Translations under genes and position numbers: made by a program
Assembly (NCBI GenBank): GCA_001643675.2
Contig: LSRY02000022.1
Span: 186,001 to 250,000, forward strand
DNA: 64,000 bases
Direction of reading: 5' to 3'
Origin: Monocercomonoides exilis PA203
Lineage: Eukaryota > Protista > Preaxostyla
Part shown: piece after piece, positions 273-43,182 of the stretch
Layout of the letters: each line of letters starts with the position of its first letter
Numbering within the stretch: the stretch's first letter is position 1
Notes under the pieces: model-generated
Databases searched by the model: none
What the model was told of the DNA's origin: nothing
The model's input: the letters and a program-made list of their open reading frames with translations, nothing else

Positions 273-830
273 CTAATTCATCCCAATCACACTCACTGCC
301 TTCCCTTTCCCAACAACTGAAATCTTCTTTTCCCCAACACTGATTGTTGTCCCTTCGCTCACATGCCTTCCACTTAGCAACGTGATTGTCGAGCTCAGCT
401 GCACCATGCTCGACCCCACTGCATGCCCCACAGTCTTGCACGGTGCTGCCTCACTCATCCCACACAGATTGCTCGTGTCACTTCCACTCACTCCAACATA
501 TCTATCTTTCATCCCTTCCTTCAACCATTCCTTCTTTTCTGTATGCAGATATGTCCAACTGCCTGAATAATATCTATGGCACACTCTCGTATCATTTGTA
601 TTCGTTGTGTACGATTCGTAGAATGGGTTGTTCGAAGAAAAGTGATTGTAATAATCTTCAAAATACACATCATGGCCATAAGTCGTGGAAGTTGTTGTGC
701 AACTGCAATCATGGAAGAAGAAGAAATAGCAATAAATGTTGTTGCTTGGAGCAGCTGATTGAGCTGGATACAACTCCATTCCTCCACCATTCGACACCGC
801 TGAGCACGAAATGAACTGGAGACTTCTCAT
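273..830 (-). pseudogene. Fragment of the large surface-protein family (same family as 21247..29811)
   Basis: ORF has GGG...YGHDVYF...PFYESYTT...W...YVGVSGSDTSNLCGMSEAAPCKTVGHAV, which parallels GNDVFF...PFENCGST...W...VASNGTDADACGRPQQTPCATIEYAL in the large gene. It is truncated at both ends. Confidence 0.7.
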
Positions 831-1679
831 TTTAAAAGCAGATGGAACAGTTTAGCAAAACATCCCTCCACTCCACTTTGTCTTCAACAAACACAAAGTG
901 AATTTGCTCTTGAACACACAAGCACACTCCCCATTTCCACCTTCTGTTTTAACACAGCTTTTATTATTTTTAATTTTTCAAAAAGAAGTCCTTTTTAGCA
1001 AAGTGCTTAAAATGATGATTTGAACTTAATTCTTTTGTTCTAATAATCGAATAATTTTTAATGTTGTTCTACCAATTATCACTGAAATAACGATTCTTCA
1101 TTCTTTGAGAAACATGCTTCAGTTACAGCGAACAATCATACTCTTCTCATTTTCTGAAAAATTTTCCTTTTTTATTTGTTGTCTTTCTTATCGTTTTATC
1201 CGTTCCACATTCCCTTCATTAATAATTTCAGATATTGTTTTTATTTATTTGAGACCCTAACTGATTGATGGAACATCCAGAATTAATTTTCTTTTTCAAC
1301 ATAACGTTTGTTAATGCTAACATGTTTTAAATTTACGAGAATTCTAATTGATAACAAAGATTCAAAAAAAATAGCAGAGGGATTAACTGAAGTTAATTTT
1401 GTTTTTTCAAATTCAAATTTGGATCTCAATAAATGATCTTATTCTCATAAAATCTGTTGGATTGAAAGAGTTATTTATCATTTCTTCTTTAAGCAATATA
1501 AATCTTGAGTACAAATATTTTTATTAGAATATATTGCTTGTTTAGAAAAATATAAGAATTTATCTAATTAATATAATTGATTGATATTCAAAGATCATGA
1601 ATATAACTTATAAAAATTGAACCATATTTTCAAAATTTTGAATAATAATTAAAGGGTGTTTATTTCGTTTGATTCATTA

Positions 1680-4640
1680 ATGTCTCAACTTCTTCAGTTT
1701 GCAAATGAAACAAAACAACTCCAGAAAAGAAACTTTACTACAAAGGACACCTTTAAAATGATGAGAGATTTTATTAAGGAATGTAAAAAGTGTGTATTTT
1801 GTAAGCATTTGGCTATTTTCCTCGGAAAAAGTGGAACAGGCAAAAGCACAATGATAGATGCTTTATTGGGAATACCACTCAATGAAACATGGGACAAAAA
1901 AATCGTGAAAGTCAACGAATCGTCTGAAGGACCAGATATTGGAGATGGAAAATTAGCGAAAACACCGTTTCCAGAAGCTTATAAGCTGGATGATGGATAT
2001 TGGCTATTAGACACACGTGGATTTCATGGATCTGATATCGACACCGAAACAGACATTATCAGTACACTGATCTTGGAAGTGTATCTGAGAGTTAGCACAA
2101 AAGTTTCAGTTTTGTATCTCTCTGAATTTGGTAATTACTACAATTTCACGAATTTGAAAGTAGACATGCTGCTGGTGAACGATATATGTGAGGACATGAA
2201 TCTGCCCGTTTTATTTGTTGCCAACAAATGTTTTAGACTGAATGTCAAACAGGTGTCAAACAAAGATCCTGAAGAGAAAAAAATCGAACAAAAGAATCAA
2301 ATCAAGCAAATTGAGGAATATCTTTTCAAGCAGTTCGATGATATGCGCGAGGATCAAATGAAAAAAATCAAAAATAAATATTTCAAGCAAATTAATCTTT
2401 CAGATTCAGATGCACAATGTGATGAAAAGACTTTCAGAACACTCATTGAAAAAGCAAACGCTTCAACAGGGCTGGAAACTATCAATTTGGAGAAGTGCTT
2501 GAATCATTTTAAAATCCTCTATATGCTGAAAAAGGCACTTGATGAAAACCGATTTATATACTATGATGCAGTGAACAGTTACTCAGTTGATAGGATTAAA
2601 GGCATTGTGCGTGATGAACAATATTATGTGCATTCTAATCGTTTATCGCTTGGCCGCTGTACACCTGAATCCTCAATGTTCCTTAATTCAGTTTCTGAAA
2701 TGGCAATCAAACTGAGTTGGCTTGTGGAAGCAATGATTGGCAGAATGTTTTTTCCAAAAAATATGAAATCTATCAAAGAAGGATGCGAAAATTATGTGAA
2801 GGAATGGGAACAAAAATATGACAAGTTGAGTTCAAAAGAAAGGAACCTTCACGCTGAATTGGATGACTATGAACAAGAAATCATTAAGCTGAGTGAAGTC
2901 GAAAGGAAACTTAATGCTGAATTGAGGGAGTTGGAACTAAATAGCAGAAAGCTGAATGAAGATGAAATGAAACTTAATGCTGAATTGGAAGATAAGGAAC
3001 AAGACTTTATCCAGTTGAGTGGAGATGAAAAGAAACTTAAGGATGAATTGGAACACAAGAAACAAGACAACATAAAGCTGATTGGAGATGAAGATAGAAA
3101 TAACGATGAATTGAGAAACTTGGATATTGAAAACCCAGAACTTTTGGATTCCAGAATCAAAAATGAAGAAAATTCGATGAGGGAAATAGAACGACCTCTG
3201 AAAAGTTATTATAATCAAATAGAATCACTAGACACAGATGAGCCTGTTTTGTACGATAAATATCATTTTGAAAAAAAGAGTGGATTCTTTTCGAATGAAA
3301 TCGTGATAGAAAAACCTGTCAAAGTTCCGGGCTCAATGTTCAAATTTATTCCTGGAAATGACTATACTCATGCTAATGAAAACAAATTAAAGCCGAGAAT
3401 TGAAAGTGGATGGTTTCGAGGAGCGTTCAAGGCAGAAAAAAAAACGAAAGAATTTTTAGATAAAGGTATTTCATTGCTTTTACAGTTATTATCATTTAAT
3501 CAAATGCTTTCTGTAATTGGTTCTGTTGGGGCCGAAGTTATTGATCCTATTTTTAAATTCTTCATGCCAAATAAAATATGTGCTTGTGAAGGAACAATTG
3601 AATTTTATGCGCCATCGAGAGATATTCCAACGAATCAGCAAAAAATCGAACGATGCAGAATTCAAATTAGCGAGATACTAAAACAAACTCAAAAGGCAGA
3701 AAAAAACATTGAAATTTTGCGGCAAACAAAAGCGCGGCTTGAAAATACAAAAGCAAGGATAAATGAAACAAAAGCACAGCTTGAAATAACAAAAAAAAAG
3801 ATTGATGAAACAAAAGCAAAGCTTGAAATTACAAATCATCAGTTTGAACATGCAAAAAAACTGCTTGAAAATGCAAAAACGAAGCTCGAAAAAGTCAATG
3901 CACAGCTTGAAACAACAAAAGCAATGATCAATGGAACAAAAGCGATGATTGAAAACATGAAAACGAAGATTGAAATCACAGAAGCGAAGATTGAAATGAC
4001 AAAATTGAAGCACGAAGAAACAAAAATGATGAAGGAAGTTTGGCAGAAAAGAGTGGGAAAAATAGAAGAATTTATTCAATTTTGTGATGAATGCGACAAG
4101 CTGTATAAAGAAAATAGGGAAATGATTGAACAACTGTATTTATTTGCAAAGCTCTATCTTCCGAAGGCGTTTGTGAATAAATGCAGAACAGAGAAATTGA
4201 TGGCATCAACTTCATCTTCCTTTTTGCCATCTTCTTCTGTTGTGCCATCAATGTCCAGTTCTTTTGAAGGAACGCAGCAAAAATCATCTTCTTTAGCAGA
4301 ATCCTCATTTTTGCCCTGTGTTTGCGAATGCAAAGCAATTGAAGAAGAAGAAGAGAAGAAGGAAGAACAAGATATTCCACTTGAACAACAAGTTGATGAA
4401 AACAAAAAGATTTTTGCAAGGTTCATTGTTGCATTAGAGAAACTGGAAGAAACTCACAAACAGCAAAATGATATTTCTTTAAAAATTGAAGAAAAATATG
4501 ATGCAAAGCTTGTTGAAAGAGCTGTTGAAGAATGCGGAAGAATTTCGAATCAAACAGTCGGTTGCATGGGCTATCTTGAGCAATTTAAAAAAATGAATAT
4601 ATCAATCGATGAAAAAGAAATAAAATCGTTATCTTCTTAA
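1680..4640 (+). CDS. P-loop GTPase (AIG1/septin/dynamin-like TRAFAC type) with long coiled-coil hairpin, copy 1
   Basis: Intronless ORF, first ATG at 1680. G1 LGKSGTGKST, G2 region GDGKLAKT, G3 LLDTRGF, G4 VANKC. Heptad-rich regions flank a central non-coiled domain with a hydrophobic stretch. Paralog at 40765..43182. Confidence 0.85.
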   Translation: MSQLLQFANETKQLQKRNFTTKDTFKMMRDFIKECKKCVFCKHLAIFLGKSGTGKSTMIDALLGIPLNETWDKKIVKVNESSEGPDIGDGKLAKTPFPEAYKLDDGYWLLDTRGFHGSDIDTETDIISTLILEVYLRVSTKVSVLYLSEFGNYYNFTNLKVDMLLVNDICEDMNLPVLFVANKCFRLNVKQVSNKDPEEKKIEQKNQIKQIEEYLFKQFDDMREDQMKKIKNKYFKQINLSDSDAQCDEKTFRTLIEKANASTGLETINLEKCLNHFKILYMLKKALDENRFIYYDAVNSYSVDRIKGIVRDEQYYVHSNRLSLGRCTPESSMFLNSVSEMAIKLSWLVEAMIGRMFFPKNMKSIKEGCENYVKEWEQKYDKLSSKERNLHAELDDYEQEIIKLSEVERKLNAELRELELNSRKLNEDEMKLNAELEDKEQDFIQLSGDEKKLKDELEHKKQDNIKLIGDEDRNNDELRNLDIENPELLDSRIKNEENSMREIERPLKSYYNQIESLDTDEPVLYDKYHFEKKSGFFSNEIVIEKPVKVPGSMFKFIPGNDYTHANENKLKPRIESGWFRGAFKAEKKTKEFLDKGISLLLQLLSFNQMLSVIGSVGAEVIDPIFKFFMPNKICACEGTIEFYAPSRDIPTNQQKIERCRIQISEILKQTQKAEKNIEILRQTKARLENTKARINETKAQLEITKKKIDETKAKLEITNHQFEHAKKLLENAKTKLEKVNAQLETTKAMINGTKAMIENMKTKIEITEAKIEMTKLKHEETKMMKEVWQKRVGKIEEFIQFCDECDKLYKENREMIEQLYLFAKLYLPKAFVNKCRTEKLMASTSSSFLPSSSVVPSMSSSFEGTQQKSSSLAESSFLPCVCECKAIEEEEEKKEEQDIPLEQQVDENKKIFARFIVALEKLEETHKQQNDISLKIEEKYDAKLVERAVEECGRISNQTVGCMGYLEQFKKMNISIDEKEIKSLSS
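2823..3137 (+). repeat. Five degenerate 63-bp (21-aa) coding tandem repeats
   Basis: KLSSKERNLHAELDDYEQEII / KLSEVERKLNAELRELELNSR / KLNEDEMKLNAELEDKEQDFI / QLSGDEKKLKDELEHKKQDNI / KLIGDEDRNNDELRNLDIENP. Confidence 0.9.
3726..4019 (+). repeat. Fourteen degenerate 21-bp (heptad) coding tandem repeats
   Basis: TKARLEN TKARINE TKAQLEI TKKKIDE ... TEAKIEM TKLKHEE; DNA unit approximately ACAAAAGCRMRGMTTGAAAWN. Confidence 0.9.
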
Positions 4641-6529: not shown

Positions 6530-8580
6530 TTAAATGGAAAATACAAATTTCACAGGAACGCTGATGATGCCGTCAGCTACTCCCACTCGTCCACAAACAC
6601 ATACACACGAAGCACTCAACATCCCAATCATCCCTTTCCAGTGGAACATTTGCCCGATCACGAACGCAGCATCCCGCAGAGCTATCGACGGCACACTTTC
6701 CTGCGGCACAACCGCCCCTATCGCAACAAACTCGTCCATCCTCTCTCTCTGCCTGTCCGAGCTCAAATGCAACGACACTTCATCTGATGCCAAACATCCA
6801 CCTCCACCCACCCCCATACCCCCACCTATACCCACACCCCCTTCTCTTCTCATCTCTCTCCTCCCAAACAGCCTCTCCCCAATGAACGTGACGCTCATCG
6901 TCCCGTCCGGCTGTATCATCCCTTCCACAACCGGCTTCCCCACAATCCGCTCCCGCTCCGCACACAGCTCCACCAGCGCCCCCGTCACCGTCATCGTCAC
7001 CAGATAGTCCCGCCGGTTCCCATACGCACTCTCGTCAATCAGCCTCAAAAACTTCAAATGTGGAGATTCCATATCCAGAATCTGCTCTTCCTTCTTCTTC
7101 TTCTTCGTCGTCGTCTTTTTCGTCTTCTTCCTCTTCCTCTTCCTCTTCCTCTTCCTCTTTATCTTCTTCTTCTTCTTCTTCTTCCTCTTCCTCTTCCTCT
7201 TCCTCTTCCTCTTCCTCTTCCTCTTCCTCTTCCTCTTCCTCTTCCTCTTCCTCTTCCTCTTCCTCTTCCTCTTCCTCTTCCTCTTCCTCTTCCTCTTCCT
7301 CTTCCTCTTCTTTCTCCAAATCTATCGAACTTCCCTCTCTCCCTGACTCCTCATTTGTTGCCAAATCATTGGAAAACATTTCCACATGTTTCTCATCTTT
7401 CCCCGCTCCATCTGAACTTCTATCTGAAGTTATGTCAAAAGACCCATCTGCTGCGCTTCTTCTGCTCTCCTGTTCTCCTGTTGGATGCTATCAGATGGAG
7501 AAGAACTGCACACTTTTGGTTCAACTGAATGCTGCTTGTCTGCACCATCCTCAGCCTCCGCCTCCATCCCCGCCTTCACAAACCTCAACCGACTCATTCC
7601 AAGCACCTCCACAACCAGCGGCGCCATCGCTTCTTCCAACTTCACCTGGTTCTCTTTGATTCTCTCCACAAACTCTCTGTGAGCTGTCGGATACGCTCCT
7701 TTCTCCTCATTTCCATCACCTCTCTCTCCTTCCATCTTCTTCTCCCTCTTCTTCTCCCCTTTGCCTCCCTCTTTGCCTCCCCTTTCTCCTTCCCTCTGCC
7801 TCTTCCTGCTCTTTCAGCACAGCCAGCGTAATCGATACTTGTGACAGAATAACATCCTCCATCCCCAGCCACGCCTCTGACAGCTCCTTCGAATCAATCT
7901 TCCCAACTTCACATCCGCACACCTCGACTGCTGTGACCTCCATATCAGCAGAGAAGGGTCAAACAGATCGTAGATCGAATGGAATGCTATTCACATCTGC
8001 TGCCACAAAGATCCGCTTGCCCCCCGACTTCGTGCCCACCGATGCTGCAAGCGACGGAAGCGGAGCCACAGGCGGAACAAAAAGCATCGTCAACAGCGCC
8101 ACATCGTATGCACACACAACACCTCCATATAGCACCTCCCGCCGCTCCACAACAAATCATTCGAAGCGTTTGTTGCTCCCTCAGTGATGACTGTCTGTGA
8201 TTTTCATTCACTTCAGCCGCCTCTCGATGTCGTCCATCGCTCCTGCCGACGCGTTTGACTCCGCCTCTGCCAAGGCATCAGAAAAGTCAATCGCAGGCGC
8301 TGATGAAGATGATGGCTGCTCATTCTCTGAAGATTTCTTCTCTTCACTTCTCCGCCTCCGGAATGGCGAAGTTGATCGGCGTGCTGCTCCTGTTGAAGAA
8401 GACGAAGAAGAAGAAGGTGCCGAGCGAAGAGACGACTGCCGAGCTGCACCAGCCACAAGAAGCTTTTTCAGATACTCCACCACGTCAGCCAGAAGCTCAG
8501 CCGGAGACACAAGCACAACATCCACATTCGGATCAGAAAGATCGACCGACCGCGAAAGCTCTCCGTTCTCGAGTAACAGT
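6530..8580 (-). pseudogene. GC-rich disrupted gene of unknown function with a poly-Glu tract
   Basis: Consecutive protein-like minus-strand ORFs (8208..8525, 7959..8150, 7716..7943, 7430..7735, 7035..7385, 6530..7072) separated by in-frame TGA codons and frameshifts. GC content is clearly above the flanks. Confidence 0.6.
7088..7311. repeat. (TCTTCC)n / (GAGGAA)n microsatellite, poly-Glu on the minus strand
   Basis: Long, near-perfect hexamer run. Confidence 0.95.
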
Positions 8581-38522: not shown

Positions 38523-39730
38523 TGGAAATCGGGGAGGAATGGTGGACGGACGGGCTTAATAGGTTCAATGTTCCTGATCTCATTATCTTTGAGTCTCGAA
38601 ATAGTGTCGCTTCCGCAACTTGGTCTTCGTACACGTTCAGCTTTGCGCATTTTTCACAGGCGTTGGAGGAAGAGGGATATAGAGACTTTCCGAATGAATT
38701 CACCGATTGGTCCCAGATCTGTGCTAACATTTTCATAAAGTTGAGAGGCAAGGGTTTACCATATTCATGCCTTTGCACCACGAGATCCGCTGTCTCGTTA
38801 TTCACCAGAATCAGTAATGGAGAAAACCTGGGACAATTCCCATTGATAGAAACATTATTCCGCTCGTTTCATCGATCTCACATTCTAAGGAGACCTTACA
38901 CATCTATGTGGTCTCTTTCAATAGTATTTGACTATTAATATCGCATGACTCCAAATGAGGAATTATCGTTCTTCGACCTGACCATTAAATGCATCATCCT
39001 GTTAATTATTTTCACAGCATGTCGCTTCCGCGAGATGGAAAGAATATCCATGAACCAATCCGTGTTTCAAAAGGAAATGATCCATATATTCACAAATTTG
39101 AAAACATCTCCAACACTCTCAAATATAACAGTTCCATTTTTGAAAAGCACGGACGAAAAAGTTTGCCTATGAAGAGCTGTTAAATCACTTTGGGGCAGAG
39201 TTATGACAACTTATGAAAATAGAGATATATTTTTGCTCAACACGGTACAGCACACTCCGCTTAAAACAGAAGGAATACGTAAGTTAGCCCGCCTTGGAAT
39301 GACGCAGATTGGGATTCCAGCTGAATATCGACCTTACACTCTCAAGCATGCAGCAATTTCTGCACTATTGTTCAAGGGAGTACCAGAAGCAATGGTGGCG
39401 AGACACGCGCGTATGTCCCCAAGCTCACACACTCCAACTCGTTCATACTTCAAAGCAAATTTAGCTTCAAGGATGGCGGACACCTTGTTGTCAACAGTCG
39501 ACAATTGGAAACCTCAAAGCCAAATGTGCTTGCAGGATAGAAAGGATTATGCTCAGTCAGCGCAAACCACATCTTTGAATTTTCCAAAGACCTCTGAAGG
39601 AGAAACAATATACCCCAACAAGGTTGAAGAACCAGGAGAAGAAAACCGTGATTATGAAGAGATTCTTGTGGAAAGAAATCAGGAAGGAGCAGTTGCAATT
39701 CTGAATACAATGATTGGAGTCGGAGCTTAA
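38522..39730 (+). pseudogene. DIRS tyrosine recombinase (two in-frame stops)
   Basis: TWSSY...RSAVS...Y.SMW; LTIKCIILLIIFTACRFREM; YTLKHAAIS...ARHARMS...TRSYF. Stops TAA 38936 and TGA 39170, same frame throughout. Confidence 0.88.
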
Positions 39731-40681: not shown

Positions 40682-40764
40682 AAATATCTTAAAACAAAAA
40701 TTTCAACCCATTTTTCCGATAGTGAAAAATTATATTAAGGGTGTCTCTTTTGATTGGAACATTT

Positions 40765-43182
40765 ATGTCTCAACTATTGCAATCAGAGAGTGAAATAAGG
40801 CAACGAAGAAGCATTAACATTTCCTCAAAGGAAGGGTATAGCATTATTAGACGATACAATGATCAATTCAATTCATATGGATCAAATAAACATTTGACAA
40901 TTATCCTTGGAAAATGTTCAACAGGAAAAAGCACGATGATAGATGCTTTGTTGGGAACTGAGCTCAATGAAACTGATGAAGGAAAAATCGTTAAAGTCAA
41001 CAAATTGTCTGAAGGGCCAAAAATTGGAAATGGGAGAATTGCTGAAACACAGCTTCCTAAAGTTTATAAGCTGGATGAACGTGTTTGCCTGTTGGATACA
41101 CGCGGATTTTATGGGACCAATATCGATGATGAAACAGATATACTCAATACACTGATATTAGAAGCGAATCTGAGAAAATGCAATAAAGTTTCAGTTTTGT
41201 ATCTCTCTGAATTTAATAATTACTGCAATTTATCAAGATTGGAAGAAGACATGCTGCTAGTGAACGATATATGTGAGGATATGAATCTGCCCGTTTTATT
41301 TGTTGCCAACAAGTGTTATGCACCACTATGTTACAGACTAAAGGGAAGCAGTGAACCAGAAAACATCAAAATTGATTAAATTGAAGGATATCTTCACGAA
41401 CAGTTCATGGAGATGTATAAGGGGCAAATGGATGAGATCAAAAATAAATATTTCAAGCAAATTAATCTTTCAGATTCAGATGCACAAAGTGATGAAAAGA
41501 CTATCAGAATACTCATTGAAAAAGCAAACGCTTCAACAGGGCTGGAAAAATCCAATTTGGTGAAGTGCTTGAATCAACTTAAAATTCTCGTTGTTCTGAA
41601 AAAGGCACTTGAAGAAGGACGATTCATATTCAATGATCCAGTTAACAGTTACTCAGTTGATAGACTTAAAAAAATTTTACATGATGAACAATATTATGTG
41701 CATTCTAATCGTTTATCGCTTGGCCGCTGTACACCAAAGTCCTTCATGTTCCTGAATTGGACTTCTGAAATGGCGATTAAACTGAGTTGGCTTGTGGAAG
41801 CAATGATCGGCAGAATGCATTTTCCAAAAAATTTGGCATCGACTAAAGAAGCATGCGAGTCATTCATAAGGATGCTGGAGCAAGACAGTTGCAAGCTGAG
41901 TTCAGATGAAACGAAACTTTTCGATGAATTGAGAAAATTGGACGTTGAAAGTCCAGAACTTGTGGATTCCAGAATCAAAAATGAAGAGAGAACAATTAAG
42001 AATAATCGGGAAATGATCAATTTCAGTGAAAAACTAATCGCTTCACTTGACACGGATGATCTTGTTTTGTACGATAAATATCATTTTGATAAAAAGAATG
42101 ATTTCTTTTCGAATGAAATCGAGATTGAAAAGCCTATAAATATTCCAAACTCAACGTTCAAATTTACTCCTGCGAATGAATATACTCATGCTGATGAGGA
42201 TAAATTAAAGCCGAGAATTGAAAGTGGATTGTTCCGAGGAGCATTCAAGGCAGAAAGCAAAATTCATAAAATGGCATCAAGTGGACTTTCATATGCTACA
42301 ACTTTAATTCCCTCTGAAAAAATTAAGATTGTTGCAGGCGCTGTTGTGTTCGGCTTAACTTCGCCTTTGTTGAAATTACTCGTTCCGAATAAAACATGTG
42401 TTTGCGAAGGAACAATTGAGTTTTCAGCCCCATCGAGAGACTTACCGACAAATGCGCAGAAAATCGGGAAGTTAAAAGCCAGAGTGGCAGACATGGGTGA
42501 ACAGATTGAAAAAGCGAGCAACAGCATCGCTTTTTTGCAGGAAACAAAGGAGAAAATAAAAATGGCAAAATCGAAGCTCGAAGAAGCGGAAATGATGAAA
42601 GATGTTTGGAAGAAAAGAGTGGAAAAATTAGAGGAAATTTTGAGATTTTGCGAAGAGTGCGACAAGATATATGAAGAAAATCGGAAAAAGGTAGATCAGC
42701 TGTACTTATTTACAAGGCAATATCTTCCACAGACATTTGTGAATCAGTTAAAAGCTGAGAAATTGATGGCATCAACTTCCTCTTCCCTTTCGCCATCTTC
42801 TTCTGCTGTGCCATCGACATCCAGTTCTTTTGAAGGAAAGCAGCAAAAATCATCATCTTCTTCAGCTGAATCCTCGTTTTTGCCAAGTGTATGTGAATGC
42901 AAAGCAATTGAAGAAGAAGAAGAAGAAGAAGACTTTTCACTTGTTCATCAAGCAGACGAAGACAAAAAGATTTTGGCAAGGTTCATTGTTGCAATGGAGA
43001 AACTGGAAGAAACTCACAAAAAGCAAAAAAGCGTTTCTTTGAAGTTTGAGGGGAGATATGATCCAACAGAAGTTGGAGAAGCCGTTGATGAAATCGGGAA
43101 CATTTCTGATCAAACAGTCGGTTGCATTGGCTATTTTGAGCAATTCAAAAAATGCATTGAAAACGATGAAAAAGAAATGTAA
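40765..43182 (+). pseudogene. P-loop GTPase/coiled-coil protein, copy 2 (short stalk; one in-frame TAA)
   Basis: LGKCSTGKST, LLDTRGF, VANKC. Colinear with 1680..4640. TAA at 41377-41379 aligns with CAA (Gln) of copy 1; the two ORF halves share a frame. Confidence 0.85.

Follow-up and report, generated by a model that had tools for sequence, protein, structure and literature searches.

Two tandem arrays of equal length on the facing strands of a predicted hairpin stalk in a GTPase of Monocercomonoides exilis

Monocercomonoides exilis, an amitochondriate oxymonad that lives as a gut protist, carries a family of large proteins whose sequences mark them as GTPases, and one gene of this family, here called copy 1, begins near the left end of the window, by which we mean the whole 64,000-nucleotide stretch analysed (C17:186001-250000; contig LSRY02000022.1 of the 82-Mb assembly). 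Copy 1 is longer than its short paralogs by exactly 84 residues at each of two places, the two gains are built from tandem arrays of different DNA units, and the two places are predicted to lie opposite each other on the outgoing and returning helices of one antiparallel stalk. It is the single long-stalk member of its family. The structure models, together with the geometry of the arrays, point to a hairpin of which both strands were extended by matching amounts in copy 1, a reading that we hold to be fairly probable. The features on which the argument draws are the following, with helices and strands as predicted by AlphaFold2, confidence given as the predicted local distance difference test (pLDDT), and anchors taken from the family hidden Markov model (HMM):

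1680..4640, plus strand: copy 1 gene, an intact open reading frame for protein P0001 (986 residues), from the ATG at 1680 to the stop codon TAA at 4638-4640
1791..2234, plus strand: G domain, about residues 38-185, placed by invariant columns, weak Pfam GTPase matches and structural matches
2268..2744, plus strand: helical middle domain from G domain to stalk, about residues 197-355, with predicted helices 197-235, 248-288 and 329-355
2763..3230, plus strand: arm 1, the outgoing stalk helix, residues 362-517, placed by predicted secondary structure and by hairpin matches over both arms
2823..3137, plus strand: arm 1 array, five units of 21 residues (63 bp), residues 382-486, placed by in-frame repeats and the 84 extra residues between HMM anchors
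3231..3626, plus strand: tip domain, predicted to be beta-rich, residues 518-649, with strands 522-586 and 636-645
3444..3560, plus strand: hydrophobic segment of the tip, residues 589-627, of low model confidence, placed by a Kyte-Doolittle scan
3627..4112, plus strand: arm 2, the returning stalk helix, residues 650-811, placed by predicted secondary structure and hairpin matches
3723..4037, plus strand: arm 2 array, fifteen heptads (21-bp units, xTKAxLE), residues 682-786, placed by the 84 extra residues between HMM anchors
4197..4394, plus strand: Ser-rich acidic linker, predicted to be disordered, residues 840-905 (pLDDT ~25; low-complexity in the alignment)
4398..4634, plus strand: C-terminal helical domain, residues 907-985, with predicted helices 907-926, 942-958 and 960-985 (pLDDT ~90)
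40765..43182, plus strand: copy 2, a short-stalk paralog and probable pseudogene (in-frame TAA at 41377-41379)

The equality of the two gains was the central claim of an earlier reading of the window from its sequence alone, and it holds by two routes. Aligned pairwise with MAFFT, copy 1 and copy 2 (open reading frames 1656-4640 and 40741-43182) are 61.5% identical and are separated by two gaps, each of exactly 84 residues. Independently of gap placement, four HMM anchors (GR after the helical domain, LD before the tip, CxG after the tip and a Trp after arm 2) delimit arm 1, tip and arm 2 as 162, 119 and 152 residues in copy 1 and as 78, 119 and 68 residues in the short paralogs on the same contig, so that the differences are 84, 0 and 84. 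The predicted helices differ likewise, with 156 residues against 72 for arm 1 and 162 against 78 for arm 2.

The arrays behind these gains lie where the sequence-only reading had placed them (2823..4019) and differ in their DNA units, as it had also stated. Tandem Repeats Finder reports a 63-bp unit in 4.0 copies at 2838-3092 (73% matches) and a 21-bp unit in 13.3 copies at 3725-4004 (65% matches). The five units of arm 1 (unit identities 0.54-0.78) stand against one in the short paralogs, just as that reading had counted; its fourteen heptads against two in arm 2 are here fifteen against three, which leaves its gain of twelve heptads intact. Shifting the arm 2 array against itself by 21, 42 and 63 gives identities of 0.65, 0.66 and 0.61, and thus no 63-bp super-period, indicating that the two arrays grew in different units and ruling out the trivial explanation that the equal gains reflect an equal number of same-sized units. 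Both arrays are 105 residues long (5x21 and 15x7), each gain comprising four extra 21-residue units in arm 1 or twelve extra heptads in arm 2, and because the gain is twelve heptads per strand the heptad phase is kept. The proposed contrast of an acidic outgoing arm with a Lys-rich returning arm is real but modest: the arm 1 insert has a net charge of -9 (25 acidic, 16 basic residues) and the arm 2 insert one of +7 (19 basic, 12 acidic).

An assembly artefact as the source of the arrays is excluded, since Logan contigs of four DNA runs of a single sample, sequenced once in 2022 and three times in 2016, cover both arrays with the same length throughout, one unitig spanning 2717-4270. Short contigs of runs X3 and X4 carry T>A, T>A and C>T at window positions 2418, 2433 and 2440; these are probably pieces of a paralog aligned to copy 1 and not alleles. 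A segmental duplication or a mobile element as carrier of the gene was likewise rejected, the flanks of copy 1 sharing 60-70 nt, on the downstream side only, with two paralogs.

Copy 2, with which the sequence-only reading made its comparison, serves for the length difference and fails as an intact gene. Where copy 1 and the paralog L032 read CAA, copy 2 has its in-frame TAA, the codon that also terminates copy 1 and copy 2, so that copy 2 is probably a pseudogene; an alternative code in which TAA encodes Gln was rejected, as neither TAA nor TAG occurs inside the 986 codons of copy 1 and TAA is the stop of the two genes. The annotation splits copy 2, the downstream open reading frame being P0004 (591 residues). 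Because its DNA is 89% identical to that of the intact L032, copy 2 appears to be a recent duplicate that has since died. The intact short paralogs on the same contig, L031 (MONOS_5585), L032 and L033, give the same comparison as copy 2. MONOS_5585 and MONOS_9437 are among the M. exilis proteins named for this genome.

The proposal that the two arms pair as an antiparallel hairpin, for which structure prediction of both stalk lengths had been suggested, is supported by the models, at the level of prediction. Given an alignment of 16 paralogs, AlphaFold2 modelled MONOS_5585 at a mean pLDDT of 76.4 and copy 1 at 71.9. The short model runs from the G domain through the helical domain into a helix (357-428) that is kinked at the proline closing the repeat unit, then into a beta-rich tip (433-556) that carries a low-confidence hydrophobic insert, and back through a second helix (561-638), with both arms modelled at pLDDT ~90. 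In the structural alignments (VIA-align), this model matches the hairpin of EHBP1 over 82/82 residues (root-mean-square deviation, rmsd, 1.7; model 398..608), and moesin, prefoldin and the MukB hinge with its arms (346..628) match as well. These solved single-chain antiparallel hairpins span both helices and skip the tip, which argues that the arms are packed together in the short model. For copy 1, the best overall structural matches are antiparallel stalks, namely the dynein stalk with its microtubule-binding domain (8i3j; Z 14.0, model 378..781) and the Smc coiled coil (5xg2; Z 13.5, 227 aligned residues), with PspA matching at rmsd 2.0 (model 375..784) and with the tip-proximal part (484..687/697) covered by hairpin matches of its own. 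Since the pLDDT is 84-94 for repeat units 1-3 and for heptads 5-15, new repeats are paired with new repeats in the model. A complex prediction with the arms as two chains (362-520 and 648-812) scored 0.06 against a mark of 0.34 and speaks neither for nor against pairing.

The positions of the arrays agree with this layout. The arm 1 array of copy 1 stops at residue 486, which is 31 residues short of the tip-side end of the helix at 517, and the arm 2 array opens at residue 682, 32 residues beyond the start of the returning helix at 650. The short paralog, with its one unit at 377-397 and its three heptads at 593-613, keeps this spacing of 31 and 32 residues to the tip. This spacing, together with the equal array lengths, would place the arrays exactly opposite each other in an antiparallel hairpin. 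At ~0.15 nm per residue, the predicted stalk grows from ~11 nm to ~23 nm; 84 residues at ~1.5 Å each add ~12.5 nm, in agreement with the 12-13 nm that the sequence-only reading had calculated.

Divergence within the arrays indicates that neither is recent. Copy 1 differs from its sisters by a synonymous divergence (dS) of 0.52-0.59, with a ratio of nonsynonymous to synonymous divergence (dN/dS) of 0.40-0.52, and with its intact open reading frame the gene looks alive. Within the arrays, dS is ~0.4-0.5 for arm 1 and 0.37-0.40 for arm 2. These values are near the dS of 0.52 to the nearest paralog, which indicates that both expansions are old and of similar age; they would thus date close to the origin of copy 1, their lengths having stayed equal ever since. 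The chance of exactly twelve extra heptads among ~20-25 plausible counts is ~4-5%, that of the sole large arm 1 and arm 2 expansions sharing one of ~24 loci is ~4%, and that of both coincidences jointly is a few in a thousand, all of these being rough post-hoc estimates.

The weight that such estimates can bear is limited by a number of observations that tell against matched extension of a hairpin, several of which favour an explanation by coincidence, in which two slippage-prone arrays expanded independently and neutrally and arrived at 84 residues each with no structural coupling. The matched lengthening is a single event, found by inspection, and its probability was estimated only afterwards. 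The dN/dS inside the arrays is ~1, indicating that little beyond the helical pattern is constrained, and no RNA runs, and hence no expression data, were found on searching. The family also tolerates 18-33 unmatched residues in arm 2: in the clade of L041, L042 and L044-L048 (contigs C59, C22, C31 and C51) this arm is longer by 18 residues (14 in L042) with arm 1 unchanged, among homologues its excess reaches 33 residues with no compensation by arm 1, and with copy 1 set aside the two arm lengths show a correlation of r = -0.13 (n = 18, sequences not independent). As to structure, both the hairpin and the pairing of the new repeats are predictions, and the model of copy 1 is not one continuous rod: its mid-stalk is of low confidence (residues 444-483 of arm 1 and 689-716 of arm 2), and the register i+j is ~1160 in the proximal matches and ~1170 in the distal ones, a shift of ~10 residues. 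Coincidence nevertheless seems quite unlikely to us, given that the gains are exactly equal though the unit sizes differ, that both expansions occurred in one of ~24 loci, that the arrays lie 31 and 32 residues from the tip, and that AlphaFold2 confidently pairs one set of new repeats with the other. Pairing of the arms between molecules, for example in a dimeric four-helix bundle or a domain-swapped rod whose assembly would need equal gains, is also unlikely. Helical parts do mediate assembly in many large GTPases (dynamins, GBPs, GIMAPs) and in SMC-like rods, hydrophobicity at the core positions is only weak in both repeats, and the low-confidence mid-stalk of the monomer model would suit such an arrangement; the monomer models, however, already pair the arms at pLDDT ~90, and the compact tip is the sole connection between the arms, so that folding back is favoured.

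A broader proposal was that the family is a set of molecular rulers, with the stalk tuned paralog by paralog and the arms kept in exact register. Coiled-coil rulers are a known principle (PMC5082667), and three stalk classes can be told apart in the genome, namely none (P0013), standard and doubled (copy 1). We nevertheless consider the proposal very unlikely, and for the M. exilis genome the family-wide reading is largely refuted. Copy 1 alone is expanded among ~24 tip-bearing loci, which leaves little of a paralog family with adjustable reach; the remaining full-length loci share one stalk length, all with the standard arm 1 apart from one pair with 10 extra residues. Across distant homologues with reliable anchors, arm 1 measures 77±3 residues and arm 2 73±10 (63-101), and the uncompensated variation of arm 2 speaks against selection holding a strict register as a rule of the family. 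The expected slope of one between the arm lengths accordingly rests on one large point, copy 1, and on P0013 as a weaker one. Small and medium differences between the arms thus go uncompensated, and the sequences indicate no graded tuning of the stalk. In the clade with the longer arm 2, the tip is ~21 residues shorter.

P0013 (L034; G000:C13:1575956-1577653, minus strand) deserves separate mention as the other locus in which both arms differ from the standard. In this protein of 573 residues, 28 residues stand in for residues 368-614 of MONOS_5585, a region made up of the distal part of arm 1, the tip and the greater part of arm 2. On the predicted hairpin the two cuts lie opposite one another (368+614 = 982, against a hairpin sum of 989-995), which fits a second, weaker case of both arms changing together. 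Its G3 motif, DTRG elsewhere, reads EADN, and P0013 has no stalk and is probably inactive; lacking the tip as well and having a degenerate G3, it is not a shorter ruler.

The family to which copy 1 belongs comprises ~25 loci in a six-frame search of the genome, and a search with the tip domain alone returned 24 loci, all within that list. Besides copy 1, 15 loci are intact (746-1091 residues), and several others are pseudogenes, among them four near-identical dead copies. These four (G000:C31:5236-7613, C59:464936-467313, C78:41475-43851 and C78:29091-31467) share the same stops and identical search scores, which suggests recent segmental duplication of a pseudogene. A profile search run exhaustively over 1.84 billion proteins gave 86 hits below 1e-10, including full-length relatives of 680-830 residues; the one named relative is the "G domain-containing protein" KAK8895232.1 of Tritrichomonas musculus, the remainder being metagenome proteins. 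By sequence, then, this is a family of large GTPases of metamonads, found in Monocercomonoides, Tritrichomonas and metagenome sequences. Literature searches found no published description of this GTPase family, and a search on matched-arm insertions returned nothing relevant.

The assignment to GTPases draws on motifs, profiles and structure. In copy 1, G1 is the P-loop GKSGTGKST and G3 is DTRG, both conserved in the family, and the invariant columns are G49, K55, G114, N182, K183 and C184. The last three form G4 (window 2215-2225), in which the usual Asp is missing in all paralogs, so that specificity for guanine is not assured. The match to the Pfam family MMR_HSR1 (PF01926, TRAFAC class) is marginal: its cut-off of 21.9 bits is passed by the N-terminus of copy 2 (24.0), P0005 (22.1), P0006 (25.6) and P0014 (25.9), with copy 1 itself below it. 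Dynamin_N reaches 22.8 bits against a cut-off of 27, over residues 55-81 (the P-loop) only, and 22.3 bits in P0014. AIG1 (PF04548) does not match copy 1 and reaches 17.7-18.6 bits against a cut-off of 27 in distant homologues, again over the P-loop only. Among structures, the nearest neighbours of the G domain are GIMAP7 (3zjc; Z 11.1, rmsd 3.5, 180 residues) and GIMAP4 (Z 10.5), and EngB (Z 10.4), Era-like proteins (Z 10.2) and HflX (Z 10.2-10.4) tie with GIMAP7. A search of the ESM Atlas with the whole model gave only generic MMR_HSR1, Era and EngB clusters. A match of P0001 to PF24161 (CCDC39) was set aside as a generic coiled-coil match, the real CCDC39 gene being on contig C29.

Outside the G domain and stalk, two further parts are shared by the family. 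In a Kyte-Doolittle scan, the best 19-mer of the whole copy 1 protein lies in the tip, and in most homologues scanned the most hydrophobic segment is at the matching tip position. A feature search of the ESM Atlas gave no usable match for the tip domain and structure searches gave template-modelling (TM) scores of at most 0.32, so that no known fold can be named for it. The C-terminal helical domain of copy 1 is conserved in the alignment of paralogs.

The layout of the family recalls several known systems, to none of which it seems to belong. Like members of the dynamin superfamily and bacterial dynamin-like proteins, these proteins would combine a G domain with a helical hairpin stalk and a membrane-seeking tip, the stalk and the tip being predictions here. 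With the whole model, Foldseek places LeoA (4aur, E 9e-4), IniA (6j72), DynA/B (5oxf) and BDLP (2j68) at the top, and these matches are weak (E 9e-4 to 1e-2, TM 0.09-0.17). Unlike the G domain of bacterial dynamin-like proteins, that of this family is small and nearer to Era, EngB and GIMAP, and the tip is predicted to be beta-rich where dynamins have a helical paddle or a PH domain. As with GIMAPs, the family is lineage-expanded and includes pseudogenes; its many paralogs, its pseudogenes and its raised dN/dS would also suit a fast-evolving family of the kind of GIMAPs and IRGs. It departs from GIMAP/AIG1 and from Era/EngB in its G4 motif, NKC without Asp, and in its predicted long hairpin stalk with a tip domain. 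The arms of SMC, MukB and Rad50 and the stalk of dynein resemble the predicted stalk in being intramolecular antiparallel coiled coils with a globular apex domain. This resemblance is one of analogy and not of homology, for the head here is a single N-terminal G domain, whereas that of SMC and Rad50 is an ABC ATPase formed from both termini and that of dynein is an AAA+ ring. By the features tested in sequences and models, the family thus appears to stand outside the dynamin, AIG1 and SMC families while sharing their layout.

What sets copy 1 apart from the SMC and dynein stalks is that its lengthening is still visible as two young tandem arrays. Matched arms are already established for such hairpins (SMC proteins, dynein), and a change in length of the SMC arms, Rad50 or the dynein stalk must alter both strands together; in SMC proteins, the strand lengths are jointly constrained and natural lengths fall in steps of ~100 residues (PMC5344682). 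The evolution of matched lengthening is rarely visible, as the strands have usually diverged beyond recognition. Coiled coils as spacers and rulers have been reviewed, including the antiparallel coiled coil between two domains of HsdS, the specificity subunit of type I restriction-modification systems (PMC5082667). The HsdS case is nevertheless a different one, the repeat change there being of 4 residues in one helix only, in a protein unrelated in kind and function. The spacing in HsdS shifts with the number of copies of a short tandem repeat that one helix carries, as between EcoR124I and EcoR124II.

How the stalk of copy 1 came to its present length may be pictured as follows. A protein with an N-terminal Era/EngB/GIMAP-like G domain, a helical domain and an intramolecular antiparallel two-helix stalk would bear, where the stalk turns back, a beta-rich tip whose hydrophobic segment probably seeks membranes; the returning helix would lead into a Ser/Glu-rich linker without fixed structure and on to a small helical domain at the C-terminus. 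In the outgoing helix a stretch of 21 residues would have been multiplied by five (from 1 unit to 5, each of 63 bp), and so would the three heptads that face it on the returning helix (from 3 units to 15, each of 21 bp), in separate events that added 84 residues to each strand. Residues left unpaired on one strand would be unfavourable in a hairpin, and this is the most likely reason for the equal lengths; we infer that matched length was selected and that the stalk helps to set how far the head stands from the membrane. Our best guess at the function, guided by the models, is that of a membrane-directed large GTPase, in which a hairpin stalk would keep a nucleotide-gated head at a constant distance from a tip that binds membrane or target, with copy 1 as the long-reach variant. 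That copy 1 is in fact a working long-reach variant of a new membrane-directed family of metamonad GTPases, its stalk doubled by way of two independent arrays, is possible, though doubtful enough that we advance it tentatively.

Should copy 1 be such a variant, its head would act ~23 nm instead of ~11 nm from a membrane or target bound by the tip, and the gene would be a natural example, readable from sequence, of an antiparallel coiled coil lengthened in matched steps. What would be new is both a GTPase family with a layout of head, stalk and tip and a matched lengthening still legible as two independent facing arrays, a finding limited to one gene with a predicted structure. Together with its intact short sister MONOS_5585, copy 1 forms a natural long and short pair in which effects of stalk length could be studied.

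Two other reading frames of the window may be recorded. The open reading frame at 39203-39730 (plus strand, 175 residues) resembles by eye the C-terminal part of a tyrosine recombinase, with no Pfam match at E ≤0.01. That at 6530-7072 (minus strand) matches the Pfam family ATP-grasp_IQCH with 31.5 bits (E 1.5e-7; cut-off 27 bits) and probably represents one exon of an IQCH-like gene; it is adjoined by a long low-complexity run rich in Glu and Ser (7035-7659).

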